From Pelomyxa schiedti (Eukaryota; Protista; Evosea), in contig JAHLWZ010000910.1 in assembly GCA_020536535.1 (NCBI GenBank), forward strand, positions 1-50,641: a stretch of 50,641 nucleotides of DNA, given 5' to 3'. The notes beneath the pieces were generated by a model. That model worked only from the letters and a program-made list of their open reading frames with translations, had not been told where the DNA came from and did not search any database. The position numbers and the translations under genes were made by a program. This document shows positions 5,201 to 50,641 of the stretch, one piece after another (positions within the stretch are counted from its first letter, which is position 1; each line of letters begins with the position of its first letter).

Positions 5201-8200
5201 CTGGGCAGGTGCAAACTGCTGTTCAGCTTGGTGCGTTTTAGAAATGAATTCCTCCAACTGGGAGCGTAATCCCTGTTCACGGTTTGCGGCATGAAGATTT
5301 TCTGCTTTTGCTTCAGCGACTTGTTTTTCGGTATCCTTTTTTTCCCCAAAGAAGCTGTCATCAAAGAAGGCAATCATCTCTTACCTTCAGAGAGCATTTC
5401 AAGTGCTCAGTCATTGTCTCTTTTTGTTGCAGAAGCAAAGTCAACTCTTCAATGTGCTTGGTGCGTATTTCTATCTGTTCTCTGGATTTCTTAACATAAA
5501 ATGAAAAACAAGCAATAACCAACAGGCTACTCCTACCTCCATTTGGGAAGTAATCTGGGCAATTTCATTCTGGAGATGTAGCAGTTTAGATTCTTGTGCA
5601 GATATCTCCTCTAGGGAACTCCTCTATACGGATTTAATATATTAACCAGGTAACAATCACCCTTACCTCCTTTTCCTTCATTTGGTCCTGAAGAACGGAC
5701 AGCCTGTCCGTTAGCATTGCGTTTGTATTGTGCAGGGCTTCTTTTTCATTTTTAAGGGTAGTTACAGCTTCTTCTTGTGAAGAGATTACAGAGAGCCTCT
5801 ACCTCAATATTAAACAGGGGAAGGGGAAAAAACCCATGACACCACACCTGGGTACACTTATTTTCAACTTCAGTCAATTGCTTTGTTAGTTTGTGCACAG
5901 TGGCTTCACTGTCCAACAATTTTCCTTCTGAAACACTTGAAGCCTCAGATTGCTTCTCCAGTTTCTCTTGCAACAGACGGTACTCTGCCTGGAGTTGGGC
6001 ATATTTACTGTTTTCTTCCTGCAATGTGTATTCGTGTTCCTTTTGGCTGGTGACAGCACCATCTCTAATTATGGATATCTTGTACTCCAACTCACTACAA
6101 TACTTCTGCTTTTCCATCAAATTATGTTCTAGCTCCTCGACTTTCGTTTCAGCCTCCATTAACTTTTGCCTCAGTTGTACTAAAGATTCCTCTTGCTTTT
6201 GGGTAAGCTCCACCACACAACGCTCTTCCCGACTGAGCTTTGCTTGTAAATTGTCCTTTTCTTCTCGTACTTGTCGGACCTCTTCTTGTGCTCGCTGCAG
6301 TTGTAGATGACTATTTTGTTGTTCTTCTGTCAGCAAATTTTGTAGCCGGGAGATTTCTTCTTGCATTCCGGCAGCCTCTAACTTGTGCCGCTCACCCTCT
6401 GAGGTATATCTGATTTCCATATCCAGAGTTTTTTGTGTGAGATGCTTGACCTGTTCATCAAGCTCCTGTGCTTTTGTTTGGGCTTTTACTGTCAAAACAT
6501 CAAGATGGGTCTTCTCATTGCTGAATTCAGTTCTCATGGAAGAGAGTTTCTCCTGTTTACAAGTGTGAAAAGAAAAGTAGTGGCAGACACTCAAAACGGT
6601 ACCTTCATCTCTTCCAGTTGTTTTTGGAGCTCCACAATTTCCTTTTTGTGCTCTTCTTCTGTCTTATGAAGAGCTTGTAACTGGGCTGAAATTAATTAGA
6701 TCAAATTATGTTAAGGAATTCCTTACAATCTCTCTCTGCCACATTATCAGAAAGAGATTTAATGCTACTTAGTAGTTCAGTGTTTTCCGTGGTGGCATTC
6801 TGTAGAGAAATCCTGGAAAGAAGATCACTTTGTGCCCCAAAAAAGAGTGTTATCCTACTTTAGGTTCTCATTTGTTGTATTCACGACTCCCAAGTGAGCT
6901 TTGGTAGATGTCAGTTCCTCACATAACTTTTCTTTCTCAGATATGGTATCTTGAGTTCTAGACAATTGTTGTAAGGAAAAAACCAACCTGACAAGCTGAA
7001 GTTAAAATACTTGGAGTTTTGATAGTAGTCCAACTCAGTTTGGAGCCTTGAGATTTCTCTTCTTAGCCCTGTGATGTCAGAAGTCCTTCCTTCCTTCTCA
7101 GCCAAAGCTAACTTGGTCACTGCTTCCTCCTTCTCTTGTTGGGCTTGACAGAGAGCTTTTTGTTCCCCAAAGAAAAAATAATCTTTAGTGGATTATAAAA
7201 AATAATCAAGCCTACAGGTCCCAAGATTTTGATTTGCCTGTTGCAGATTAAGCATACTCTGTTCCAAAGCAAGTTTGGAGTCAGTATTTTCTTGGTAGAA
7301 TGTCAAATCGAAGAAAGAATTGATAGTACAACCCTTGGCAGTCTCTTTTAGTGCTAATATTTCCCTCTGAAGCTGCTCTATTGCTCTCCTGTGATCCTCT
7401 TGTATTCTTATTGAATCTTATTTTTATTGAGACCACATAATGCAAGGGAGGAATAACCTTCTTTTTCTCTTTGCAGTTCATTCTTTAAATCTAGCAATTG
7501 ACAATGCGAATTTTGAAGATCTTATCAAAGTAATCAACCCATTTTACATAAAAGAAAAAGGATACTGGATTGTAATGTTTCTCTTTCAAGACATATATCC
7601 TCTTTTATGTGTACAGTGTTATGGAGTTGCTGTCTTAGCTCTTGTGCCAAATTGAATTATATACGAAATGGCGTCAAATCACTTACCTTGAATTTCTTTT
7701 TCTTTTGCCTCCAGATGAAGGAAAGATTCTTGCTGTAACTTAGTATATTCTGGAAATGTAAGATTAAGCTACTAAAGAGGAACAACCTGCTAATACTGTT
7801 TCCTTTTCCTGCAACTCATTGCTTTGGAGTGTTGTGCCACCATTCACCTGGGATTTCAGTAGGGTATTTTCCTTCATATTGTTGATAAATTTCCACTGGA
7901 ACTTTAAAAATACTTGATGCAGAGACTCTATTTCTCTTTCTAGTTGTGTCATTTGTTCCCTATGAACCAAGAACTTCTAAGGGGAAAAAAAAACAACAAC
8001 ACAAGAGGAGTTCTTGCCTCATACTATCATCTGATTGCAGATGGGCTTGTGCTTGCTCCAGCTTCTCAACCTGGGTAACAAGCTCTGAGATTTGTTGTCT
8101 TTGCTGTTCCAGAACTTTTGCTTGTGCGTTGCATTTTGCATAATTCATTTCTGAATGAAAATAAACAAAGAGTTCAGGTAGATGAGAACTTACCTTCATC

Positions 8201-9989
8201 TCTCCCCAACAAGCGCATCTGGTAATCTTTGGAGAATCAAATAAATGTAAAGTGAGCTCAGTAGTGATTTACCATTGCATTTAGTTTGAAGTGCCTCAAT
8301 TTCTTGTTGCATTGCACTCACCTGTTCCTGTAGAATTCGAATTTGGGTTTTTTCGGCATTCTCCACAGAAGAGGGACTATTTGCTGCTGGATCACACAAA
8401 TGTGCTAGGGGGGAAATGGCTGGGGGGCTTCTGGATATTGTTTGATGGGTGTATGGAGTTCTTCTCGCCAAGAGTGTTGGTGGTGTCTGAGATTGGGAGA
8501 AGGAGCGGAATGGGTGCACTGGAGTGCGTCCTGGGGACAACTGGGGAGGTAAAGGAGAAAAGGGTAACAGGGGGGACTGTGGTGGGGTGGAAAGTGACAG
8601 GGTTGTTGTGGGTGAGGCTGGGGGTGTATGATGCCTTATTGTTGGAGAGTCTGGAGGTGTAAGGTGCCGAGGAGTCTCCTTGGCAGAGGTTGTTCGTGTC
8701 AGAAGAGTACTCATTACCAACCCACTGGTCTTTCCCTGTGGAGATAGTGGTGGTGTGTAACACGAGGTGCGGTCATCTGTAGGTTGTTCTGAAGCGCCTG
8801 TCTTCACCACCACAGTTCCAACAGCAGCAGTGTCGACAGCAGTGGGTTCCAGTTTCTTTGCCAGTGGTGTGCAGTCATCCATTGGCACATCCCCTGCCTC
8901 CATTGTCACATCCACTGCTGTGCTAGCAATTGCTGATGATGAGGAGGCTGCCGCAGTATCTGCTGCCACTGTGGGAGTCTCTGTTACTGTATCTGATTTT
9001 GTATCCATTTCCTTATCTGCCAGTGCCACTGCCGAAGTGTCCTCTGTTCCTGTAGAACTAGTGATGCATGATGGTGTTGTTGTTGCAGTGGGGACAACCT
9101 CAGCCACAGGTGTGTTGGCACTGGCAGCATCGTCTGTGATGGCGGGCGTGGTGGTTTCGCTACTGGCCAAAGGCACCAGCGGCTGTTGTTGTTGTTGCTG
9201 CTGCTGTTGTGACGTGGTCTCCCTCTGTGACGAGCCCCCCTCCTCGTCTTGGTTGCACTGCTGTGTGTTGGTGGTGGTGGTGGTAGCGACGTGGCTGTCC
9301 TGCTGGTGGTCTACAGGTTCCCCTTGTTGCTGCTGTTGTGGCTGCTGCTCCGGCTCAGTTGCTGCGGGGAGTGGCTCGGGTTGAACAGGAGGCGAGGGCT
9401 GGGGGGCGGGGGTAAGGTCGGTGCTGCAATGGTCGGGAGTGTCGGCCACGATAGTCGTGGCCTCGGCGGCGGTGGTCGTGGTTGTGTTTGTTGCTGTTGC
9501 TGCTGTTGTTGCCGTCTCGTCGATCTGCTGCTGCTGCTGCTCTTGTTGTGCTGTTTCTGGTTTGGCGGGGGGTTCGTCGTGGGTGCGGGGGCTGTCGACG
9601 AGGAATGGCACATCCGGTGCATCGATCGGGGCAGCTGTCGGAGTGTCGCTGGGGGTGGCTGCTGCTGAGCCGGTAGCGGTGGTGGGAAGTGCATCGCCGT
9701 CGCCGGGCTCCAACGGAGGAGGCGCTGCGGCGTGCAAGGACGGTGGGGGCGATGATGACAGGACCCCGGGTTCCGTTGTGTTGTCGCCTGTTGGCAGAGA
9801 ACTCGCGGGGGTGGTTGTTGTTGAGGTAACAGCCCCCTGCTCCTCCTGCCCCACATCCTGTGGTGGTTGAGGTTGAGGTTGTGCGTTGGGGGTTGGTGTC
9901 TCTTGTTGCTTCTCGGGTTCCAAGTCTGTCATGGTGTCTTTCGGTTCCTCCGACGGCTGCTGCTGCGCGTCGTCCTTGTTGTCGCACAT
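2245..9989 (-). CDS. Very large protein: intronless P/T/Q/A-rich N-terminus, long coiled coil, C-terminal BRCT domain(s); multi-exon
   Basis: ATG at 9989 (MCDNKDDAQQQ). Heptad E/K/Q/L-rich exons span ~3550-8270. BRCT signature VVNFSGF...VQKLGGEV...ITHVVVP...KTMKAMAARLLKRW and EWVDESIAAGHWLSEEGFG lies at ~2820-3127. A probable second degenerate BRCT ends in WSAFLDMII. The last exon frame is ambiguous, with the stop at ~2243-2249. Confidence 0.75.
2530..3127 (-). other. BRCT domain region (one clear, one probable)
   Basis: FSG/LGG/THVV/W..ES...G.W.E pattern in translated exons. Confidence 0.75.
9180..9550 (-). repeat. CAG/CAA trinucleotide runs encoding poly-Gln, plus poly-Thr tracts
   Basis: (TGT/TGC)n runs on + at ~9183-9210, ~9265-9280 and ~9490-9550. 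They translate to QQQQQQQQ and TTTT tracts in the 634-aa ORF. Confidence 0.85.
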
Positions 9990-10079
9990 GTTGCCTACAG
10001 ATCTTGATAGCGCGATATTGATTTTTTTTTTTGTCTTTTCCAACGGTCTGTTGCGATCCCAAAGGCGCCAAGAAGAGGA
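9990..10079. promoter_or_regulatory. Putative 90-bp bidirectional promoter with a poly(T) tract
   Basis: Lies between divergent ATGs at 9989 (-) and 10080 (+) and contains a T-tract of about 11 nt at ~10022-10032. Confidence 0.55.
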
Positions 10080-12538
10080 ATGCTGCGCTGGCTGTCGCAC
10101 AAAACTACGTCTGCGGCGCCGCCGTCCCCCCCAAGCACCTCTGCGGTGACTACAACAACCACGGTGACACCCGCCGGCGGTGCCCGCACGGCGCCGCAGA
10201 CCACCGGCAGTGGTACCACCAACACATCTCCCACGCCCACCATAGACGACGGGGCGTGGACGAACATCGACTCCAGTTCTCGCGCTTCGCCGTCGTCCCT
10301 CGCGTCGTGCGTTGCCCCCCCCACACCACCACCAGGAACAGGAACAACAGCATGGTCTGGAATGGGAACAGGAATGGGGGTGGGAATGGGAATGGGAATG
10401 GGAATGGGAATGGCAAGTGGAATGGGGGGTGGTGTTAGCGCGATGATGACTGCGTCGGGGTCCCCCGTGGCATCCAACATGCTTATGACTATGTCGGCCA
10501 CTACGCAGCGCCGCATGGACCAGCTACGGCTCCAGCCGACCCCCTTGGCCCCCGCCACTGACGGCCGCGACCCCGTCGTCACCAGCACAGGGTGTGTTAA
10601 CAGCAATATCGATGCATTCAATACCACCATCAACAGCTGCAGCAGTACATGTGGACTATCGCACCAAACTGTTCAGCCGGGTACAGTGTTCGTTGATGAC
10701 CAGAATGACATTTACACGTTGAGTGATGACGAGGGGGACATTGGCACGGGTGTTGGTTCCGGTTCTGGTGCTTTCTCTGGTGCAGTCCCTTCATCCGTGC
10801 CAGGTCGCGATTCTGCTATTCTGTCGGGTGAACCTTGTTCCATGCCGCAGCCTCCACCCCCTGCCAGTGCCTTGTTCAGCTCCTCGACGGCAAGCTTTGT
10901 GAATCCTGGTGTAAGTGAGGGGGAGGGGGAAGAAGGCCGGGACACCAACCCGGTCCGCGATTCCGCTGAGCCAGAGCCACGGGATGAGGGTTCTGCTGCC
11001 AATGCGGCTGATCAAACGTTCACTTCTAGGCCAATGGCGCCTGTCGTAGAACAGTCGGAGGCCGTCGTGCAATTTCGCCCTTCCTTGAGCCCTGATCACA
11101 CGTGCTTTGCTCTACCAACCAAGACTGGGTACCTTATCTTTTTTTTCCCCCTCGACCAACATACTGATTTCGGTACACAGCTATAAATTATTCAGATGTG
11201 AGCCCTTTGGCCTTATCAATGAATACAGTACGACATCATTTCTTCTTACCATCAAATCAACAGCACAGCTTTAGCAACCAGTCATTCTTGTTTGACTGCA
11301 AATTAGATTTTGGTGAGCGTATTGGAATAGTGGAAATGCAATGTGGGTGCGCCGTAATATAGCCCTACACCTCCCTACGAACCAACGCACAACAGGGCTG
11401 ATTATGTAGCACTTGTTGGAGCTTGTTACCAGCCCACCTTCCCTCAGCACAAAGTAACTCCCTCCTCCCATCAGATCAGAATCATTGGCCAATAATAAGC
11501 AGTTAGTTTTCTGGGACTACAAACGGCAAGAATTCCTTGCTACAGTCGAGTTTCCACATGCAATAAACTCTGTCAAGTTGAGAGAAAAAAGGTATGCACT
11601 TTCCCCAACAATTCTCCCCACAAGTTACTCCACAGAGCATTTGTAGTTGTGGTACCGTTTCTTTGCGTCTATTCCTTGTATGATTTCCAGCTCCGCCGAT
11701 TTACAATTTCGGAAGAAGGTAAATGCATTTGCCACTTTGGTCACTCCTTACGAACCATGTAGGTCTCTTTGCTGCAAGTACTGGAGAAGAAACCACTGTT
11801 GCCTTTGCTGGTCCTACGGTACGTAATTTGCGTTGTTATTAAACTTCACTTTCTACAGAAAGGACAAGTTTGTATCCAAAACCTCTCCATTTCATCTCCT
11901 CTGTGTGTCATTCAAGCCCATGCACACGCCTTACAAGCCATTGCAATCTCAATGGATGGACAAAAGATTGCCACCGCCTCAATCCAAGTAAATAAGGTCA
12001 TTTGCTATATTTCAGCATAACAAAATAAAAAAAAGGGAACAAGGATATGCATTTGGAGCTCTGAAGGAATGGTTCTCAATAAATTGAAGAGGGGGATCGA
12101 TGTTGCTGATATCGCCTGCCTGAACTTCAAACCGGACCCTCTGGAACTTGTTGTATCCTCCAACAAGCACACAATACATATTTTCAGTACCGTGTAAGTA
12201 TCTTTCTGCACCTGAGTAAAAGCACTCATCTATCAAACAGTGCACAAACGGACTTGAAATCATGGTAAAGAGCAAACTATGCCAAGGTTTTTTCCTTATC
12301 CTATTAGGGCAATGGGATATCTGTCCATTGGGAACAGCAGTGTGAGACAATTTCCAGTAACAACCACAAGCTCTCTTGTGTGGTTTGGTCTGCAAAGCAA
12401 CTTCTATCGTATGGCCCACACAACTTAACATCCCACAAACTCATTCTTTTGGAATTCACAGAACTCACCAAAGACGCATTACTAGAGTTTAATACCCAAA
12501 ACCCCACGGCCAATCCCACCGAACACCCTCTCACGTGA
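10080..12538 (+). CDS. PROPPIN / WIPI-ATG18-family WD40 protein with ~340-aa low-complexity N-terminal extension
   Basis: Propeller segments SPDHTCFALPTKTGYKLFRCEPF, LVFWDYKRQEFLATVEFPHAINSVKL, IQAHAHALQAIAISMDGQKIATASIQ|GTRICIW, NKLKRGIDVADIACLNF and VSSNKHTIHIF align to WIPI3/4-type consensus. TGA at 12536-12538. Confidence 0.85.
10359..10425 (+). repeat. (GGGAAT)n hexamer repeat encoding Gly-Met dipeptides
   Basis: About five perfect copies at 10382-10412 plus degenerate flanks; translation MGTGMGVGMGMGMGMGMASGMG. Confidence 0.85.
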
Positions 12539-18127: not shown

Positions 18128-21100
18128 CTAACTTTCGGTTGGAGACTGGTAGAGCTGGTTTGTTGACATTCCAACCCCTGTCTCGTCGTAAATGGGGTTC
18201 TCTGTGATGCCTGCACTCGTACCATCAAGCAGCGAGTTTGGAATGTACCAATTGGCTCCGTACCGAATGTGCTTTTTTTTTTTTTTTTTTTTGTTAGATC
18301 TTCGGCCTTACCAGTTATAGTTATATTTTATTATTAGTTTACTATCGTTGGTATTGGAATGAGGAATTCACCTTGTACAGGAAAAAGCCAGCAACACCGG
18401 CAGCACAGCAACCAATTACGAGGCCAATAAAGGTGCCTGAAGCTATCAGAGAGTTTTGTTTTATCTCTGCATTGCACTTGCTAGCGTCCGTTGTTGTTCC
18501 GCCACACCGTCCACACACGTCGTTTGTCAGATTGCTATACTGCTTCCCGTCACAGCCGAGACAAGTTGAATTGCCATTGCACACTCCGCAGTAGTCATAC
18601 AAAAGGCCAGATCCAGGTACACCTAAAAAGTGGGGAAAATGAGCCTAATGAGGAAAGGTTCATGTGGAATCGGTTCTCACCATCACATCCCATGCAAGTC
18701 TGGTTATCCCCTCCACATACACCACAAGCATCCCAGTGCTTGCCACTCCACAGGCGCGCGTCGCACCCAATGCAAGTTGTGCCGTCTCCACCACATATTC
18801 CGCAAGTGTCATATAAAAGGAATGACCAAGGTACACCATCACACCCGACACAAAAGTTGGACCCGCCGCAGACATCACACCTAGGGAAATTTAGAGAAAA
18901 CATTGCAAACAACCTCCATACTTGTCGTAAACTGCTCCAGACCATGCAATATAATCACACCCAAAGCACGCGTTGCTCTCTGAAGCATTTGTAACGCAGG
19001 CACCACACATGTCATATTGCAGGTTCCCTGGTTTGCCATCGCACCCAATGCAATCATCTTTCCCTCCACAGACACCGCATTTATCAATCTGCTGCTCAGA
19101 CCACGGAACGTGGTCACAACCCAAGCACGTATTGTTTCCCTCACAGACTCCACAATAGTCATATGTGGATCCAGACCAGGGGATTCCATCACACCCAAGA
19201 CAGTCATTAGTTCCGCCGCAAACGCCGCAACTGTGCAAATCAATAAGGCGGTTTTCACGTTGCGAAATGAGTGGCTTACCTATCTTCCACTGTCCCAGAC
19301 CACGGCACATAGTCGCACCCAAAACAAAGATTCATCATCGATGTATTCGATGTGCATTCCCCGCAGGAATCATATTGCATGTACCCAGGAAGCCCATCAC
19401 AACCAATGCACTCATTAGAGCCACCACAAATTCCACATTTGTCAAGTACCTGTGCTTCCGTTAATGGTATAATGGAAACGTAAAACATACTGCCCCAGAG
19501 AAGGGAACGTAGTCACAACCCAGACAGGTGTCATTGCCTTGGCAGACACCACATGAGTCATATCCGACACCTGACCACGCAACTCCATCACATCCAAGGC
19601 AGTTGTCGTTTCCACCACATATTTCACACCTTGTTTTTTTGTTGGAATTACATATGTGGAACGGGAATACTTGTCAACAACAGCCCCAGACCACGGTACG
19701 TAATCGCAACCACAACATAAATTTTGTTTGGTTGGATCCGATGTACACTCGCCGCAATTGTCATACTGCAAGTTTCCAGGGAGTCCATCACACCCAATGC
19801 ATTCGTTTGATCCACCACATATTCCACACTTATCGACTATCTGAGATAGGTGAGACTTCTACACAAAAAAGAAAAACATCCTCACAGATTTTGACCAGGG
19901 AATATAGTCGCACCCAAGGCAGGTATCATTCCCAAGGCATTCCCCACAACTATCATACTGTGAACCAGACCATGCAACACCATCACATCCAAGACATGCG
20001 TTTGACCCTCCACAAGTCTCGCAACTGTGCAGATACAATGTTATGAAAAATGAGAGTGCAAAATAACAACCTGTCTTCGACCTTTCCTGACCATGGGATA
20101 TAGTCACATCCAAGGCATTGATTGATTTTAGTACTGTCTGAAGTGCATTCGCCACATAAGTCGTAAAGAAGGTTCCCAGGAAGTCCATCACAACCAATGC
20201 ACTCATTGTGGCCTCCACAAATTCCACAGTCATCAAAATCCTGGACAAACACCTTAGACACCATGCAAAGCACCGAAGAGGTAAACTGCATACAGTTTTT
20301 GACCAGGGTATATAGTCGCACCCAAGGCATGTGTCATTCCCCATGCAGACGCCACAGGCATCATATTGCGACCCTGACCAGGGCTCTCCATCACACCCAA
20401 GGCATGCATTTGTTCCGCCGCAAATGTCGCATCTGAAACAAGTAATTATTATTGGGAAAATGGTACTGGGGGCAACTTGTCTGGTACTGCTCCAGACCAA
20501 GGGACATAATCGCATCCAAGACATAGATTCATCATCTCTGGATCCGAAGTACATGCTCCACACATGTCATATTGCAGATAGCCAACATTCCCATCGCACC
20601 CAAGACACTCGTTAGAGCCACCACATATTCCACATTTATCTACAACCTACAAGGACTGAGCAAGAGGTAACTAAGAATAGGCATACGGCATATGACCATG
20701 GCTCATAATCACAACCAAGACATGTGTCATTTCCGGAGCATGCGCCACAGTTATCATACTGTGCGCCTGACCATGGCTCATCGTCACACCCAAGGCAGCC
20801 ATTGGATCCACCGCAGATATCACATCTGTGTAATTTAAATCGCCCAGACAGTATAACACCCACACGGATTACCTGTCTACAGTGGTGCCGGACCAAGCAA
20901 CATAGTCACAACCAAGACAAAGATTTGCCAGAGTAATATTGGAAGTGCATTCCCCACATAAATCATACGGCAAGTTCCCTGGAAGCCCGTCACATCCAAG
21001 GCACTCATTACTACCTCCACAGATTCCACAGTCATCTACCTCCTATTTTTTATCATTATGAAATCCCACCATTTGATGTGGTACCGCATTTGACCATGGC

Positions 21101-24100
21101 ACATAGTCGCAACCCAGACAAGTATCATTCCCTAAACAAACCCCACACGAATCGTATTGAGAGCCTGACCATGGGTCACCATCACATCCAAGGCAAGCAT
21201 TAGTTCCTCCACAGATTTCGCACCTAGGGTAAGATTACATGAAACGAAGTTAAACACTATCCCACTTACTCGTCTGGCACAGAGCCTGACCACGGAACAA
21301 AGTCACAACCCAAACACAGGTTCATTTCGGAAGTATTAGTGGTACATTCACCACACAAGTCGTATTGAAGGTTACCAGGTTTCCCATCACACCCCAGGCA
21401 TTCGTTATTTCCATCACAAATACCACATTCATCAAATTCCTTTTCTACGATTACCAAAAAAAAAAAAAAAAGGTTCCACATACCGTTTTTGACCACGGGA
21501 CATAGTCGCAGCCGAGGCATGTATCATTCCCTAGGCACACGCCACATGAATCATATTGTGAACCTGACCAAGCAACATCGTCACATCCAAAGCAACTATT
21601 TGTTCCTCCGCATATATCACAACTACAAAGAGTTAGTAAGCCATTGCACAAGAGGCGCAAAAACCTATCAACTTCTTTATTTGACCAAGCAACAAAATCA
21701 CATCCAAGGCAGAGATTCATCAATGAAGTGTTGGTTGTACAGATGCCGCAGAGATCATATTGGAGGTTACCTGGTTCTCCATTACATCCTATGCACTCAT
21801 TGGTGCCTCCACATATGCCGCATTTATCTACCGTCTATCTGGCTTCAGAACTAAATTAAGTTGAAGAGATAATCTTACAGTATTTGACCAAGGAACATAA
21901 TCACACCCAAGACATGTCCCATTACCCAGGCATACTCCACAAGGGTCGTACTGCGCGCCTGTCCAGGGGATACCGTCACATCCGAGGCAGGTGTTAGAGC
22001 CTCCACAAATATCACAGCTTTTAGGAATTTTCAGTGGAAGTCAAGGCGATTCAAGGTTTAACTTATCAGGTTTCATCTCTGACCAGGGGACAGCGTCACA
22101 CCCAAAGCAGAGGTTCATCTCATCAGGATCAGAAGTACATTCACCACACATGTCGTACTGCATGTAACCCGGCTTTCCATCACACCCGAGGCAATCATCG
22201 CTACCACCACATATACCACATTGGTCAGGTACCTAAAAGCAGTCAAATCCTCACCACGAAGACCACAGTCAGACCGTTTTAGACCAAGGAACGAAATCAC
22301 ATCCCAAGCACGTGTCGTTTCCAAAGCACACTCCACACGAATCATATTGTTCTCCAGACCAAGCCACATCATCACAACCAAGGCAGCTATCAGAGCCTCC
22401 ACATATATCGCATCTGCAAACAAGTCAGAGAGCGCCATGAAATATTAAAGAAACCGGTCCAATTTCAGCCCGGACCATGGGATCGAGTCACATCCCAAGC
22501 ATAGGTTCATCTTTGTGGTGTTCGATGTGCACTCTCCGCACTGATCGTATTGAAGATTTCCAGGGAGACCATCACACCCAATGCACTCATCCTTGCCTCC
22601 ACAAACATCACATTTGTCCACCTCCTATTGGAATCAGACGGTTGTTACTCTGGTGGAAGCAGCACCGTTTTTGACCAAGGGATATAGTCACACCCCAGGC
22701 AGGTATTATTTCCCAGGCAAATCCCACAAGCATCGTACTGTGCGCCTGACCAGGGAACTCCGTCACACCCAAGACAGCTATCAGTGCCTCCGCAGATATC
22801 ACACCTAAAAGAGTTAAATAACAATTTGTTACAAAGAATCAGACTTGTCAGGTTCTGTGCCAGACCAAGGGACGTAATCGCAACCAAGACACAAGTTAAT
22901 CATGCTACTATTCGAAGTACATTCGCCACATAAATCGTAAGGAAGATTCCCTGGCTCCCCATCGCACCCAATGCATTCATTGTTGCCTGCACATATATCA
23001 CATTTGTCAACAACCTGAGCTAAGTTACAAAAGCAATTCTTTATGTGCATATGCTTGTGCAAACCGCGTTTGACCACGGCACGAAATCACAACCAAGACA
23101 TGTATCATTCCCGGCACAAACGCCACAGTTATCATACTGGGCGCCTGACCATGGCGCATTGTCACACCCAAGGCATTCGTCCGTTCCACCACAAATATCA
23201 CAGCTATATCCCGTTATTTGAGGTTTGTTAGGGTGGAAAAGAACTTGTCAGGCTTCTTGTTTGAAAACGGAACGTCATCACATCCCAGACACGAGTTGAC
23301 ACTATCAGGATCAGATGTGCATTCTCCACACAAGTCATAGGGAAGATTGCCAGGGAGCCCATCACAGCCGATGCAATCATCCGAGCCTCCGCATATTCCA
23401 CACTTATCAACAATCTAGCCCAAAGTGAGCTTTCTAAAAAAAAAGTTACTTACTGTATTTGACCATGCAATGTAGTCACAACCAAGACATGAACTGTTTC
23501 CACCACACACACCACAAGCATCATACTCAGTGCCAGACCATGCGATGTCATTGCAGCCAAGACACTCGTTTGTGCCACCACAAACATCACAGCTGACCAT
23601 ACACGGTTAGAATTCTAGTGATTCTGGATGTTTGTCATACAGGTCATTCTTTTTGTTAGACCATGGGACATGATCACAGCCCAAGCACAAGTTCAGATCC
23701 TCAGTTACATTGGTGCACACTCCACACTGATCATATTGACGGTTTCCTGGGAGTCCATCGCAGCCGATACATTCATCTGCTCCACCACAAACCCCACATT
23801 TATCAATTTCCTGCAAATGAAAGAATTAACTGCCAGTGACAAAGCCAACACAAAGAAAACGCACTGCTTTTGACCAGGGTACGTAATCGCAACCAAGGCA
23901 GGTATTGTTGCCCATGCAAACACCACAGAAGTCATAAGTATTGTAAGACCAAGCCTTACCATCGCAACCAAGGCAGCTATCAGAACCACCACAAACACCG
24001 CATCTGGAGAATCCATTAGTGAAAATGTGAGATACATTTTGGGTACTACTGATCCTCATGCTTATTGGACCAAGCAACATAATCACAGCCCAAGCATAAG

Positions 24101-27100
24101 TTCATGAGGTCTGGGTCTGATGTGCATGCTCCACATTCATCATATGGAAGGTTTCCTGGATTTCCGTCGCAACCGATGCACTCATCGGAGCCGCCACAAA
24201 TGCTGCACTTGTCAACCTCCTGCATCGAATTAGTCTTTCCACCTATCACTCACATGCATACCATATTCGACCAAGGGACATTGTCGCACCCAAGGCAGGT
24301 GTTGTTTCCATCACACTCACCACATTGATCGTAAGATAAACTACTGGGCTTGTCATCACAACCAAAGCATGAATTATGGCCACCACATTCGCCACAGTCA
24401 TCTTCCTCCATTCCGGACCAAGCATGTCCATCACAGCCAACACATAAATCACCTCCAGCGCAAATACCACACTAGGAGATTTAAGTTTGGATTGGAAAGT
24501 TAGTCTGAATATACCTGGTCATACACTTTCCCACTGAAGCACACTCTGTCACAGCCCATTGCTCTGTTGAGTCCTCCACAAATGCCACAGTCATCCACAC
24601 CTTATGAGATATTAAAGGTATGATAGAGGTATTTATGAGCGTCAAGGTACTTGTATTACTCCAGGGTTCCTTGTCGCAACCGAAACAGCCATTGGACCCA
24701 TCACACTCTCCGCACTATTAATGTAAGGATGGCCAAAAAAAATATGCAATACCTCATCATACTCCAAGTAAGAGAACAGAACTCCATCGCATCCAGTGCA
24801 GGAACTGGTTATCAAATAAATAGTAAAAAGAACAGGAGAGGCCGGTACGAATTGTCGCCACCGCAGACTCCACAATCATCAAAGGCAATGGTATCCCATT
24901 GCACACCATTGCATCCAAAGCATTCCCTATTTCCACCACAAACACCACAGGCATCGTAGCGGAATCCACTGTAGACTAGCCCATCACATCCTACACCTAT
25001 GGAACTTAGACCAGAACACGCATTAAATATACTCACAGGCATTATCCCCCATGCAGACACCACAGGCATCCACTTGTGCAGTACTCCATGGGAGACCATC
25101 ACAACCCACGCACGTCATGGCAATAGGATTATTTGTGCAAATTCCACAACTACTAGCATTAGATTCCAAAGGTGATTGGAAGCACCTGCCTGTCATAGAA
25201 CCACCCAGAATTCGGAACATTATCACACCCAACGCAGTCTGGAAACCAATTTAAAAAAAAACTTCCAATTCAGTCTGGGACTACCTGCTTTTCCTTTGCA
25301 AACACCACAAACATCGAGGTCAGCCTTGGACCAAGGCACTCCTGTCAATAGTGCTTATTAGAAAACTACAGTGGAAATTTCGTCTACCATCACAGCCAAC
25401 GCAAGAGGTTCCATCACCACCACATAGGCCGCATTGATCATATTGCTTCCCAGAATAAGCCACACCATCACACCCATGACATTCATTCTAAATACACCCC
25501 GTTAGGGAGCTACATGTTCATTTTGGCAGTATACCGTGCCCTTGCAGACTAGACAGTCATCAAGTTCGGCTTTACTCCAGGCCTTATCATCACAACCTGT
25601 GCAATTATCCATTGCGAGATCTCCAGGCAGTAGGCATTGACCACACAAGTCATATGTATGCGATCCAAATGCCTCTCCATTGCAGTCAAAACAGGAATTT
25701 GTGCCTTGGCACACTCCTATATTCCAGGGACATTTACTTCATGAGTACCGTTTCATTGTATAAAGGCCCTCATACCACATTGATCGTCCTTTGCCTTGGA
25801 CCATAGAATTCCATCGCAGCCTCGACACGATGTCGTGGTTGCCGAACAGCGTCCGCACTCATCATATTGCAGGGGTGGTACAGTGGCGAGACCATCACAC
25901 CCAATGCACCTATGAACAGTTAGTGAGACTTGATCAAGGTAATATAAATGACTTACTTGTTTGTTCCATTGCAGACACCACACAAGTCGTATTCGGCTGT
26001 ACCCCATTTCAGGCCAAAGCAGTCTATACAGCTAGAGCCGTTTCCCCCACAAATTCCACATTGATCATACTACACCTCCGTTAAACCTTACTCGATGGGA
26101 AAAAATTCAATACCCCAGCAGGCGGAACAGTAAACAGGTAATCACATCTAACATCGAGGACATAAGAGTCCAATGAATTGAATTGAAGTGAAGTGAAGAC
26201 AACAAACCCCATGCAAGCATCAGAGCCATCACACACGCCACAGTTGTCCAGGTCCTTATTTCCATAGGGAACCTGCTGACAGTCAAGACCTGAAAAATTC
26301 ATCAGGAAAGAGAAAGGGGGTGGCAGAAGTACAGGCGTTTGATCCATTGCAGACCCCACAGAGATCATACCTATAGGCATAAATGTAAACACTTGATTTT
26401 TGGAGATATCTTACATAAGTTTGGAAGGTGTCCCATCGCAACCAAAGCAGGTGGAGTTATCTCCACCACAAACGTTACATGCATCTACTGTGGCATGACC
26501 GCCCAGCTGGCCAAAACAATCTAAGCAACTTGTGCCATCCCCCCCACATACGCCACATATATCCACCACACTGTGGTGAGGGATTAATTATACATTGGGC
26601 AATGTAGAGGGAAAAAGAACATACGCAATTCCATAGGGGATATTTTTACAGTCAAAGCAAGAGTTAGCATTGGCTAAGGTCACACAGAGCTGACATTGAT
26701 CATAGATCTTCCCAGAGTTGCTCACATGGTCACACCCTAAGAAATAAGTGTCACAGAAAGCATTATCTGGCAGCTGGACAAACCGAAGCAAGGAAATACA
26801 GAATAAACCACTATTGATGCAGCTCCCCATCCAAGAACATTCAGGGTTATAGTACAATTATTTACTGTACTACAAGCAACTGAATACATTTGCAACACGT
26901 GTAAAAGAAATACCTTGCGAGAAGAGAGACATTAAAGGCATATGTATGGAATGGAGACACCCCAGAATATGATGCTGGTGTTACTGATGTAACGTAGGAA
27001 TACTGGTCTGAGGAAACAACCATCTTCAGGATGTTTGTAAGAATAAATACCATTCTCAGAGATTACCTTCAAGTTAGATGTCAGGTACGTCAACCCCGCC

Positions 27101-28536
27101 AAAATGGCAGGAACTACATTGGAGCTATCAGAGGCCAGCTCAAATGATGAGCCAAAACTAGGAGTCAATTAGTCATTCCCGATTTGCTCTTAATAAAGCG
27201 CATACCCAAGTGTGGTTATGAGGCTATTGTACGTTGTCATAACAGTAGGGAAGGTGGATGCGTCGTTGTTAATAACCGCAAATAGAGGCACGACATTCTT
27301 ATTGGTCAGGTGAGTTTTCAACCCAGATGCGGAAGGATAGTCCTCTCCTATGGAAAAGTTAATTTCTGCTTCTAATGTTGTAAGGAACCTGTTCCATAAT
27401 ATCTACAAGAAGTTAGGGAGGTTCCTGCAGAATCAAGAAGAGTTCCAACTGGATAACAAGGAGGCGTGTAACAGTCATCCACACAATCATAGTTATTGAG
27501 CACAGTCGAATATTTATTGTTCCAACATGAAGAAAACTTCATTTCGCGCTCGTAATGGTAATTAATATCAGTTATGGTAACAATCATCTATTAGGAGTGA
27601 GGTACGGTGATGTGACTCGCGACCCAACCTTGAGGGAAGTTGATCTCCAGCCATAGTTAGTGCAAGTTGCCTGTACAATACCAACTAACTGTGATTCAGG
27701 GTCGTCGTAACCCCAGCCAATAACAGTTTCCTAGATATTTTCCATGTAAGCAAACCAACTTCCAGCAAGCACCTTCTGAACATACCGCTACTTTTGCTTG
27801 TAAACTATTATAGTTGCTGGACAAGGTAGAAAGTGGCCAAAATCCATTATCTACAGCATAGGTTCCTGCATCACCAGCAGGATTCAGAGGCTTATCTCCA
27901 AATGTAGAGTATGCAAAGTTCGTCTCTGGCCGAGAGCTTCGCACAGAGGATATAATTCGAGGAATTAGCATGGCCACCATCTGCACATCTGGCGTCATAC
28001 TTCCAGTAATATCCTAAATGGCATGTTTGAAGTACTTCTCACTTAAGGAGAAAAATACTTGACTGAGCCAAAGATCCAACGGCTGAAGTTCTGAGGGAGG
28101 AACATGGACTAAAATGGGCACCACGAGTTTTTGATTCGGCATCAAGAAGACTTCCGTGATAATAGGGTCAATCTTGGCAGTTCAAGTGTGAGGGGAAGAA
28201 AAACAATTTGCTATTGCGTACTACGGAACCAGCAGTTGTCCACACAATCTGACTGTGACTGTGGAACCAGGTCCCGTTAGTGCAAGATCCCACAGAGGGG
28301 CCTGTGGTGTAGTTAGAACCCAGAACGAAACCAAACCCATACGTTTTTTTTTACGATGGGAAATGTGTGCACTTACCAGAAGCAGTTCCTGCCATGCATT
28401 GTGCGGTGCCAGTACACCAACCACATGAAGTACTTTGTACACAAGTTGTGCATATCGTAGACGTGCAAGCAGTGGCTGCGTAACCACAGAAACATAGCAG
28501 TGTGCACAGAAACAGATACGGTACTGTTGGGGACAT
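18128..28536 (-). CDS. Giant integrin-beta-like type I membrane protein (SP-PSI-hybrid-betaI/vWA-hybrid-Cys repeat stalk-TM-NPxY tail), multi-exon
   Basis: Signal peptide MSPTVPYLFLCTLLCFCGYAATA; PSI CTSTICTTCVQSTSCGWCTGTAQC...C...W; IDPIITEVFLMPNQKLVVPILVHV; PLDLWLSQ|DITGSM; FAYSTFGDKPLNP; GYDDPESQLVGIVQATCTNYGWRSTSLK..MIVTITD; EDYPSASGLKTHLTNKNVVPLFAV; ELASDSSNVV. These are colinear with the remembered integrin beta consensus (PVDIYYLMDLSYSM, GFGAFVDKP, DAPEGGFDAIMQATVC...GWR...LLVFTTD, DYPS...L..KNINLIFAV, LSxDSSNV). Tail ...ENPIYDETGVGMSTNQLYQSPTES*; TAG at 18128-18130. Confidence 0.88.
18480..26730 (-). repeat. Protein-level Cys-rich tandem repeat stalk (GCDxxPWSxxxxDxCGVCGGxNxCL), ~75-85 units, with a ~400-bp four-unit higher-order period over ~18900-24430
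   Basis: Directly visible in the minus-strand ORF fragments. The same four-unit succession recurs about 14 times with introns at equivalent positions. Counts are by hand. Confidence 0.9.
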
Positions 28537-29061: not shown

Positions 29062-32000
29062 ATGAATGATGGTGGTGCAGGATGTACAGTGTGGATGCTA
29101 CTCGTTGTTGTGACTACTATGACAATGACGCGGCAATGCGGGGCTACCCTTCCTACGGTTTTTCTTGAGGCTGAATATTACACTACGGCGGGTAGTTGGA
29201 GCAAGGCATCGTCTTCTACCGAATGGGACTCGTGTGGTCAGTATGTCACGACATCCACTAGCACTGGTGGCACTGCTGTGACTTACTCTTTCTCTGTTTC
29301 CTCGTATGTGTTGGACTTATTTTTTTTTTTTTTCTTTTTCTTTCTTTCCTTTCAGTGGCTAACTAACTTGATTAGGGCGGGAACTTATTCTGTGTGGATA
29401 TTATCGAGGATTGCAAATAATCCTGCTGGTGCCTCTTTGTGGCTCAAATTTGACTCTGTGTGTACTTTGCCCTAGCCTGTTCCACTTACATTTCCTAGGG
29501 GTCAAACATAGCTTGGGATCTTGTTGTTTTTGGGAACTCATGGCGCTACGTGGCAGATGTGCCACTTACTTCCGGTTCACATACCTTATCCATCACAATG
29601 AGGTAGATTATTCACCCACTTTTTTTTTTGTTTACTTTACCCTATTAGGAAATACAAAACCAAATTATACATGGATAAAATAATGATTACGGATCCATCT
29701 ACACCAAAGATGGGCTACACAAATAAAGGGAAAGCTGCACAGAACATTCCCACAGGAAAATGTATCTCTTTACTCCCACTAGCACTGTTCTTACAAATTA
29801 CACAAAGGTCAACAGGTCTACTTCGAGGTATGCCTTTTATTGCTGTTAGATCTTACATTAGGCTATAGGCGGAATTTGCATCATCTCCAGGGTCTCCAGT
29901 TTCACTTCTTGCATCTTCTACAGCCTCAATGGAAGGGGCACTGTATAAGGCTGAGTCCAGTACAACATCTTGCAGTACAACTTCTCGCTATGCCAAAGTA
30001 AAGTGATTCTTCCTTCGCCAGCTTATATTTGCACAGTTCAATGTCACTTGGTCAGAGTCAGTTTATCGCCCTGTATGGGTCAGGGTGATTGCCCCCACTT
30101 CTTCATTGAATCAACTCTCCATTTCCGTATGGATCTCTTACCTCAATCAAGAACTCAACATGTTTAGTCCTCCTCTTGTGGGGCTCTTTCTTCATTAACA
30201 GTCTCCAATCCAAGTCAAGAGTTCCAATGGGTCCCAGTACCTCCTTTTTCAATCCTTACTTTTTTTTAATTCATTCTTCCCTAAGTTTCCTGACTTGGTT
30301 ACTGTACCAAATATCTTTTTAATAACCTTTGTTACTGGCTACACATATCTTGACAAAATTTATATTGGATGGGGGGTCCCTACAACCTCTGGAACTCCTG
30401 TAAACATTCCTAGTTCAAGTGCGCATTAATACATTCCCTTGTTTACTTTTGATACTCTTTCAAGGTACTAGTTGTTCAACATATAATGGTCTATGTGATC
30501 CTGTTACTTCCTGTAGTACCGGACCTGTATGCTCCAGTTGTCCAATTGGTTACACTGGATGTGGCAACATCCAATCTTGCAACAAACCCAATGGATGTGT
30601 GCGAACTGTTCCATATGGCTGCTTTTTTGATCGAAGCATTTCCTTATTTGCTTACACCGGAACAACTTCATTCCCAACAAGTTCTATTACTATAGAAATG
30701 TGGGCTTCAAGAGCTGTGTACGTTCCAACTTCAGATATTACCCTTTTGCACTATATTAGTGGTACTTCTGAGTTCCACATCCGTTATAATCCAACTATTG
30801 GATTGTATTTGTATGCGCACTGCTACCTTCCCATTGTATTCTCATTTCCATTCCAGGTACACTTCATTGGTATCTGTCAAGCCGACAACACCCATTCTTC
30901 TTACTCCTGATATCTGGACTCACATTGCTGTTAAGGGTAATTATTATCTTGGTAGGTTCTTATCTTCTTTTAGATTTCATATGATAGAACCACTGCCAAG
31001 TTCTATATAAATGGGGCTTTAGTGGCAACTGTTACAGCCTCTTCTCCTGTTATTACGTCTCCTGGAGTTATTTCTATAGGGAAAAAAGTGGGTAAGTGCA
31101 AATTTCCTTGATTCTTCTTGTACTCATTGTTGTAGTTGATTTCACGAAGGATTTGACACTTCCGGCCTTTGGGGTTGATGAATTGAGAGTGTGGTCAACA
31201 GTTCTAACCCAAGCAACGATTCAGAGCCTCATGGGTGCAACACTGACGACTTCACAGCCCAATCTTCTTCGTACCAAGTTTTTTTCGTTTTCTTTGAGTT
31301 CCTAATGTTTCATGAAGATGTGTGGAGTTTTGGTCCTGACACAGGATCCTGCAGTCCTGTAACAACTGAGACTTTTGGTTTGGTAACAATGACAACATCC
31401 CTGACTGAATGTATGAAAACTTTTTTTTTCAAGCTTACGGTCTCAGGGTATGCCCTCTATCAACTATATTGGGCAACTGGCGGTCCCGATTGGTATTCTC
31501 AGACAAGTTGGCTCACAGGTCAGCCTTGCTCAGGAACAAACCTCTCAAGCCCAGTGTGGTACGGGCTGGATTGTGACAATTCAGGAAGTGGTAGAATTGC
31601 TACCATGTGAGAATAACTGCACATTAGCTCTTTCTCACTTTTACTAGAAATTTGGCCTTTAATAACCTTGTTGGAACGCTACCTTCATCCCTTTTTGCAC
31701 CTTTTTCCAAGCTTTCTATTTTGTAATTAGCACATTACTAATGATCGTCCCTTACACTTCTCAAGAATGGTTGATCACAACACATTAAGTGGTGCGATAC
31801 CAATAGATATAGGTTTCCTTACAAGTGCTGTTACAATGTTTCTTTCTCTCATTGTGAAACTCAACTAACCTTGCCTTGCAGATTGATGCAAAACAATCTT
31901 CTTCAATCTATGCCAACAACAATATCAACTCTAACTTCATTGCAAAAGCTGTGAGTTTGTGCAATTCTAGCTATGCGTTAATATTCATGTAGATATTTGC

Positions 32001-50189: not shown

Positions 50190-50641
50190 TGGTTAAGAAC
50201 CTAAATCAGTCAGAATCACTTTGGCCCCAGCACAAAATGGATGCACACACTGTGGTCTGTTGCCAGAATGTCAGTTACTTTGGAAGTGGTTCAAGGCAAT
50301 TTAGGCATTGAAGTTTTTGGATGGAGTAATTGACAATATACATTGAACGAAGTCAAGGCTGAATTTTGTCTCATTTTTCGAAAATTTTTTGGAACTTGCT
50401 GGACTGGATCCTAACACTTCTGTGTCGGCAGTCGACTGCCCTACGGCTATGCAACGTGGCTTAAAAGGGTCTTGGAAATAAAAAATACCAAGAACGAAAT
50501 GATGAACAAAAGCAACGCTAGCACCAATTGTTTTGGTTACGGCCATATTAGTTGGTAAACTCCACTTCCCGTCCGATCAGTGAAGATAAACCAACTGAAG
50601 CACTGCTAGTACTAGGGTAAGGGATTACCTGGGAGCGCTGT
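50190..50641 (-). CDS. Possible 3' exons of a gene entering from beyond the window
   Basis: Splice-like GT/AG boundaries and an open stretch DPFKPRCIAVGQSTADTEVLGSSPASSKKFSKNETKFSLDF; no recognisable domain. Confidence 0.25.

Follow-up and report, generated by a model that had tools for sequence, protein, structure and literature searches.

From a comparative point of view, the minus strand upstream of position 18,128 of the window (the whole stretch of DNA that was analysed, 50,641 nt from the amoeba Pelomyxa schiedti) raises a simple question: does it encode the membrane anchor and cytoplasmic tail of an integrin beta chain, and which of the motifs in that tail are likely to matter? The initial annotation had joined two segments across an intron and read the product as an integrin-beta-type transmembrane (TM) helix followed by a tail with a Trp, a proximal NPIY and a distal NQLY, an arrangement that was said to be the one binding talin and kindlin in animals. 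In substance this reading is right, but it claims too much for the distal motif, the Trp and kindlin. The segment is probably the genuine C-terminus of a protein with type I membrane topology that belongs, as a further paralogue, to the type I amoebozoan integrin betas; an exon of its own encodes the tail of 47 residues.

An integrin beta homologue with a long cysteine-rich stalk

The tail lies at the 3' end of a large, much interrupted gene; the GC content is about 45%.

18128 to 28536, minus strand: whole gene of the integrin beta homologue, with 55 exons and 2,609 aa in our model

Ten head exons of this model were placed by hand with the protein P0001 as a guide, and the repeat stalk was taken from a splice dynamic-programming model. 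P0001 (KAH3744682.1, 1,368 residues) is itself a P. schiedti protein and came up when one head exon was used in an exhaustive profile search. The close homologues all come from the P. schiedti assembly GCA_020536535.1, in which the window gene is at least the fourth integrin beta paralogue, alongside the genes at three other loci (L001, L002 and L003). Whole-protein searches with P0001 and with P0020, another of the paralogues, returned only Pelomyxa paralogues and distant matches; a homologue search with the tail region of P0020 found nothing except P0020, and the 47-residue tail of the window gene matched no PDB sequence, even at an E value of 10.

The modelled protein begins with a hydrophobic N-terminus, the signal peptide (Kyte-Doolittle 1.68), and continues with a PSI domain, a betaI/hybrid head, approximately 77 Cys-rich repeats, the TM helix and the tail. 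Exon 1 matches the Pfam PSI family below its cut-off (17.3 bits, E 0.0064), and the C..C..C....CGWC pattern of this region aligns with both P0001 and integrin beta-4. The metal site (MIDAS) of the head reads D-I-T-G-S, Thr replacing the first Ser of DxSxS. The repeats, counted with the regular expression D.C[GDES].C, follow the consensus D.CG.CGG...C.GC, so that the stalk is of the amoebozoan Cys-rich type, the animal I-EGF type being absent.

The integrin-beta-type identity proposed at the outset is borne out by the head, which after splicing is 60.7% identical to P0001 over 435 aa, and P0001 scores 76 bits on Pfam Integrin_beta (PF00362) against a cut-off of 24.8, covering profile positions 3-246 of 248. 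Identity falls to 47% with P0020, to 35% with P0014, the homologue of Mastigamoeba balamuthi, and to 25.7% over 307 residues with panda integrin beta-4. A PDB sequence search with P0001 gave 55 matches, all of them integrin beta chains. One window exon matches Integrin_beta on its own with 20.2 bits (E 5.5e-4), under the cut-off of 24.8 because the exon is a fragment only. Judged by these sequence comparisons, the protein is an integrin beta homologue and not a convergent look-alike, and Kang et al. have described its family as the type I amoebozoan integrin beta.

The reading as a Sib-type adhesin was rejected: a PSI domain, a MIDAS-like site and a Cys-rich stalk are present, and P0001 scores lower on Pfam vWA_SIBA-E (38.9 bits) than on Integrin_beta.

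Several database entries deserve comment at this point. P0001, P0020 and P0023 carry the product name 'exocyst complex subunit 4' in GenBank, a mis-annotation of what are integrin beta paralogues. The deposited model of P0020 (2,194 aa) is a chimera, in which the integrin beta is fused to a downstream PDEase_I gene; the genomic tail exon at L002:7933-8070 (JAHLWZ010000693.1) reads ..NPVYEGKSAFTDNPNFTNPTE and then a stop, which the P0020 model skips. Finally, four bacterial-looking proteins (P0003, P0005, P0008 and P0004) contain one or two integrin-beta-like vWA domains with flanking RTX-type GGxGxD repeats; their vWA pattern, DLTGSF..FRDKP..PEAQLEA..EDYP..IPIFAVT, comes with about 30% identity to the window head.

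The terminal intron and the last coding exon

The membrane anchor and the tail are encoded by two different exons.

18372 to 18622, minus strand: penultimate exon, with the last Cys-rich repeats, the extracellular linker, the TM helix and the stop-transfer Lys (tblastn with P0001)
18272 to 18371, minus strand: terminal intron, phase 0, GTGAAT...AG, 100 nt (from the sequence; same position in L001, L002 and L003)
18131 to 18271, minus strand: last coding exon, the cytoplasmic tail of 47 residues (stop codon 18130-18128; homology to P0001)

The penultimate exon ends with GGC TTT TTC CTG TAC AAG at 18372 (..GFFLYK); the intron has its GT at 18371-18370 and its AG at 18273-18272; and the last exon opens with CAC ATT CGG TAC GGA GCC AAT TGG at 18271 and stays in frame for 47 codons up to the TAG at 18130-18128. 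These borders coincide with those given by homology. In tblastn, residues 1233-1318 of P0001 align to 18623-18372 with 59% identity, stopping exactly at 18372, and residues 1319-1360 align to 18271-18149, P0001 thus being contiguous across the proposed borders. P0020 gives identical borders with its residues 1144-1219 and 1220-1248. At the identical codon boundary, a phase-0 GT..AG intron is found in L001 (46 nt), L002 (56 nt) and L003 (145 nt), the intron sequences being unrelated; those of L001 and the window cannot be aligned. The junction of the initial annotation is therefore upheld by the tblastn borders of two proteins and by an intron position common to three paralogues.

The exon beyond the intron is 74% identical to the tail of P0001, and a comparison of its codons 1-32 with L001 yields 15 identical, 13 synonymous and 4 replacement codons; by these counts it is under purifying selection. 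Also correct was the remark that the list of open reading frames misses the real frame: nothing in that list ends at 18128, because Met35 of the tail is the first start codon in the frame.

The intron itself is less typical. The gene has 54 introns with a median length of 45 nt, and at 100 nt this one exceeds all the others. A run of 20 A at 18274-18293 directly precedes its acceptor AG, where a pyrimidine tract would be expected; the run may be genuine, or it may have arisen during whole-genome amplification or assembly. The donor and acceptor scores (2.3 and 3.2) lie inside the range of the other introns of the gene. A CTRAY branch-point motif occurs in 18 of the 54 introns, compared with 14% by chance, and its use as evidence for the intron was discarded, the motif not being reliable in the introns of this gene. 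When splice sites were scored ab initio by a dynamic programme combining codon usage and splice-site scores, the terminal intron was not singled out, several alternatives lying within 2 units. Because this modelling could not choose the terminal intron, the junction is placed by homology alone.

These peculiarities of length and 3' end, and the fact that the first-pass splice model put both endings level, are what speaks for an mRNA that stays unspliced here, so that the tail exon is unused and the protein stops nine residues past the membrane (..LYKVNSSFQYQR, stop at 18344-18342). Such an ending is, however, extremely improbable: the frame downstream is the one that matches the P0001 tail with mostly synonymous changes, the three paralogues sharing the intron position have transcript-refined models, and the six best solutions of the second-pass model all finish at the 18130 stop. 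For the P. schiedti annotation, its authors drew on transcript data to improve the gene models (PMC8887013). On the homology described, the spliced tail exon is almost certainly the real C-terminus of the protein.

The transmembrane helix and its exit from the membrane

The hydrophobic part of the penultimate exon was delimited by hydropathy and by an alignment with homologues (A2, five sequences).

18375 to 18449, minus strand: TM helix, 25 residues (LIASG..GFFLY), from hydropathy and alignment A2
18411 to 18437, minus strand: GxxxGxxxG (GTFIGLVIG), from alignment A2

Nowhere else in the protein is hydropathy as high as in this stretch (Kyte-Doolittle 19-mer mean 2.18, compared with the 1.68 of the signal peptide), and the K-H-I-R that directly follows it fits the positive-inside rule. 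The protein has type I topology, with a single TM helix and a cytoplasmic tail. Across the five homologues, the invariant residues of the helix are G13, I16, G17, A28, F30, F31 and Y33. The GxxxGxxxG that had been noted is present where it was placed, and its first half (G13..G17) is invariant, while the third Gly is found in only two of the five, which restricts the conserved element to a single GxxxG.

The exit from the membrane reads AGFFLYK (18372-18389), and AGFF[LI]YK is present in four of the five homologues. The GFFLYK of this exit is closer to the hinge of animal integrin alpha chains (GFFKR) than to that of the beta chains.

Motifs of the cytoplasmic tail and their conservation

Three elements of the tail can be distinguished, of which the first two are the better conserved.

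18236 to 18259, minus strand: juxtamembrane box GANWYIPN, containing the Trp; invariant in all five homologues including Mastigamoeba (alignment A1)
18188 to 18199, minus strand: proximal NPIY (alignment A1; chance estimate)
18149 to 18160, minus strand: distal NQLY (alignment A1; chance estimate)

In the five sequences of alignment A1, the invariant tail residues are G5-A-N-W-Y-I-P-N12, L14 and Y28. The last of these is the Tyr of NPIY, which the initial annotation had located exactly, and it is invariant within an otherwise variable region. The proximal motif reads NPIY, NPIY, NPVY, NVLY (P0023) and SGMY (Mastigamoeba), with Asn in four and Pro in three of the five sequences, always followed by D or E. 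Since neither Asn nor Pro is invariant, as NVLY and SGMY demonstrate, the conservation may concern a Tyr-acidic site and not an NPxY turn.

How often such motifs arise by chance was estimated from 200,000 shuffles or random 47-mers. NPx[YF] is expected in 1.3-2.1% of tails, any Nxx[YF] in 20-30%, and both motifs together in 0.2-0.4%. The low figure for NPx[YF], together with the invariant Tyr, makes the proximal motif significant and constrained. The distal motif, with a chance expectation as high as that of any Nxx[YF], is not significant by itself. NQLY is indeed present at 18160-18149, as had been noted, and its position is loosely kept: across the five sequences it reads NQLY, STLY (in the closest paralogue, which lacks the Asn), NPNF, NEAW and NNPL, an aromatic residue being usual and Asn being found in four; in Pelomyxa it is followed by xxP[TK][DE]. 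On these comparisons, the distal NQLY is suggestive at best as a functional motif. Its proposed binding to kindlin has to be given up: premetazoans are reported to lack kindlin though their beta tails have a distal NXXY/F (Meller et al., PMC4325847), and the distal motif cannot, for this reason, be a kindlin site.

The Trp of the tail, which had been listed with the integrin-beta-type features, stands 17 residues before the Asn of NPIY, within the invariant GANWYIPN. In animal beta1 the Trp is 5 residues before the Asn of NPIY, and the animal Trp at that position packs against talin. At a distance of 17 residues, the amoebal Trp is therefore not the positional equivalent of the talin-packing one; its presence stands and its correspondence to the animal residue does not.

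One could go further and take only GANWYIPN and GxxxG as functional, with NPIY and NQLY as lineage-specific drift in a disordered tail that resembles the animal motifs. Between Pelomyxa and Mastigamoeba no stretch other than GANWYIPN is fully invariant, SGMY and NNPL occupy the two motif positions in the Mastigamoeba homologue, and a second Nxx[YF] is not a rare event by the above estimate. Drift alone is, however, distinctly improbable as an account of the proximal motif, whose Tyr never varies and is always followed by D or E in a region that otherwise varies; moreover, NPx[YF], with its chance of 1-2% per tail, is seen in three paralogues, and most amoebozoan integrin betas have NPXY according to Kang et al. 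(10.1101/2020.04.29.069435).

A possible mechanism of the tail

In the mechanism that we favour, that of a talin-linked integrin beta tail, the invariant GxxxG would mediate helix-helix packing, with a partner subunit or with itself, and the invariant Tyr in N[PV]xY[DE] would form a beta-turn to which talin docks with its PTB-like F3 lobe. Docking of talin would connect the receptor with actin, as happens with the beta tails of animal integrins and with SibA of Dictyostelium. The GANWYIPN box may stand in for the membrane-proximal HDR(K/R)E helix of animals and would probably be the element on which regulation or binding chiefly depends in this lineage, with the distal NQLY serving as an accessory site at most. 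By analogy, talin docking on NPIY is plausible: the proximal NXXY/F site of SibA binds talin (PMC4325847), the force carried by SibA, a protein with two NPXY motifs, depends on talin (PMC12686525), and talin is present throughout Amoebozoa, with a near-complete adhesome in M. balamuthi, according to Kang et al. (10.1101/2020.04.29.069435).

The main rival explanation takes the Tyr motifs as trafficking signals, through which endocytic or recycling adaptors (PTB-domain or sorting-nexin FERM proteins) would set the level of the receptor at the surface; it is compatible with a role of talin, the two not being mutually exclusive, and we regard it as unlikely. The NPxY motif was originally described as a signal for internalisation, recycling is among the functions of integrin NxxY motifs, and the acidic residues that follow the motif in all five homologues, unlike in animal integrin tails, would suit such a role as well. 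The distal NXXY/F of premetazoan beta tails must, according to Meller et al. (PMC4325847), do something other than bind kindlin. However, a signal of the LDL-receptor type requires an aromatic residue at -5 from the Tyr, a position occupied here by Thr, the tail contains neither a YxxPhi nor an acidic dileucine signal, and it is talin binding to an NPxY tail that has a direct amoebozoan precedent (PMC4325847, PMC12686525).

The gene neighbourhood and the question of a partner

Head-to-head with the integrin beta gene lies a gene for a LamG-LRR-EGF giant (29139-31391 on the plus strand of the window; L001:1-2533; L002:1-2557). The arrangement recurs at two of the three paralogous loci, where the neighbour is colinear with that of the window and shares 50-65% amino-acid identity with it; the pair looks like a duplicated two-gene cassette. 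No integrin-alpha-like gene adjoins the integrin beta gene.

Elsewhere in the window, a GC-rich island (8200-11200, GC 0.60 compared with about 0.42 around it) contains long open reading frames on both strands, namely one of 634 aa on the minus strand and one of 368 aa on the plus strand, the product of the latter being without an exact match on record. A 5S rRNA gene (50535-50641, plus strand, 71 bits) is cut by the end of the window.

Taken jointly, the parts of the molecule and its neighbour can be read as an 'alpha-less' integrin run by Archamoebae, an idea to which we assign a low probability. The beta-like subunit would self-associate via the invariant GxxxG; the alpha-like GFF.YK hinge and the lineage-specific GANWYIPN switch box would be united in one chain; talin would be coupled via N[PV]xY[DE]; and the extracellular partner would be the LamG-LRR-EGF giant, head-to-head in three paralogous cassettes. 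If true, inside-out regulation would have been solved differently here from the alpha/beta clasp of animals.

What the Pelomyxa gene adds

Amoeba integrin betas with NPxY tails were already reported in 2020-21, and the window gene is therefore a further member of a known family. The preprint by Kang et al. reportedly appeared later in Current Biology (2021). A literature search found no paper linking Pelomyxa to integrins, Pelomyxa is not named in the sections of Kang et al. that were consulted, and what is added is thus, in the first place, a lineage, that of an anaerobic archamoeba with at least four paralogues. Further additions are a far longer stalk than has been reported, a conserved intron parting the TM helix from the tail, and, as the best-conserved cytoplasmic features, GANWYIPN and the alpha-like GFF.YK exit. 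Present views of how integrins evolved are left unchanged: the gene is an intron-verified genomic example in support of the view that integrin beta tails with NPxY sites predate animals. On the practical side, the constrained residues of the tail (GANWYIPN and a single Tyr) are named for the design of mutants, and attention is drawn to a chimeric gene model and to three GenBank proteins with wrong names.

Comparison with animal integrins, Sib proteins and type I amoebozoan integrin betas

When compared with the tails of animal beta1 and beta3, the Pelomyxa tail is alike in its length of about 47 residues, in NPIY beginning 26 residues after the stop-transfer Lys, in having a second NxxY, and in the Ser/Thr residues ahead of the distal motif. 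The tyrosines of the two motifs are 13 residues apart here and 12 residues apart in the beta1 tail. In contrast, there is no HDR(K/R)E hinge, the tail opening instead with K-H-I-R-Y-GANWYIPN; the membrane-proximal talin-binding helix is absent, as is a Trp at -8 from the Tyr; and the residue after the Tyr is acidic, whereas it is basic in animals. Outside the tail, the I-EGF stalk of animals is lacking, and kindlin is absent from the lineage (PMC4325847).

The Sib proteins of Dictyostelium (SibA-E) are likewise amoebozoan single-pass adhesion proteins with a vWA domain, and P0001 also matches Pfam vWA_SIBA-E. The statement of the initial annotation that they carry GxxxG in the TM helix and two NPxY-type motifs agrees with Kang et al. 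and with PMC12686525; it is the proximal of these motifs that binds talin and bears force (PMC4325847, PMC12686525). The difference lies in the extracellular part: according to Kang et al. (10.1101/2020.04.29.069435), Sib proteins occur in dictyostelids only and have neither the three cation sites nor the Cys-rich stalk, whereas the window protein has a PSI domain, a MIDAS-like site and a Cys-rich stalk.

The closest known counterpart is the type I amoebozoan integrin beta, for which Kang et al. (10.1101/2020.04.29.069435) give PSI and vWA domains, a stalk motif DXCGXCGGX3-6CXGC, NPXY/F in the tails of nearly all members, GXXXG in three, lack of LLxxxHDRKE in all amoebozoan integrin betas, and introns in the M. 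balamuthi genes. Two differences can be named: the approximately 77 stalk repeats of the window protein compare with 3-7 counted in that work, and the window protein is without a charged membrane-proximal motif. Shared with the family as described there are the signal peptide, the PSI domain, the betaI vWA head with MIDAS, the stalk motif, the single TM helix, the cytoplasmic NPXY/F and the lack of LLxxxHDRKE, and the M. balamuthi homologue P0014 shares GANWYIPN in addition to its 35% head identity. In every feature tested, the window protein agrees with the description of this family.
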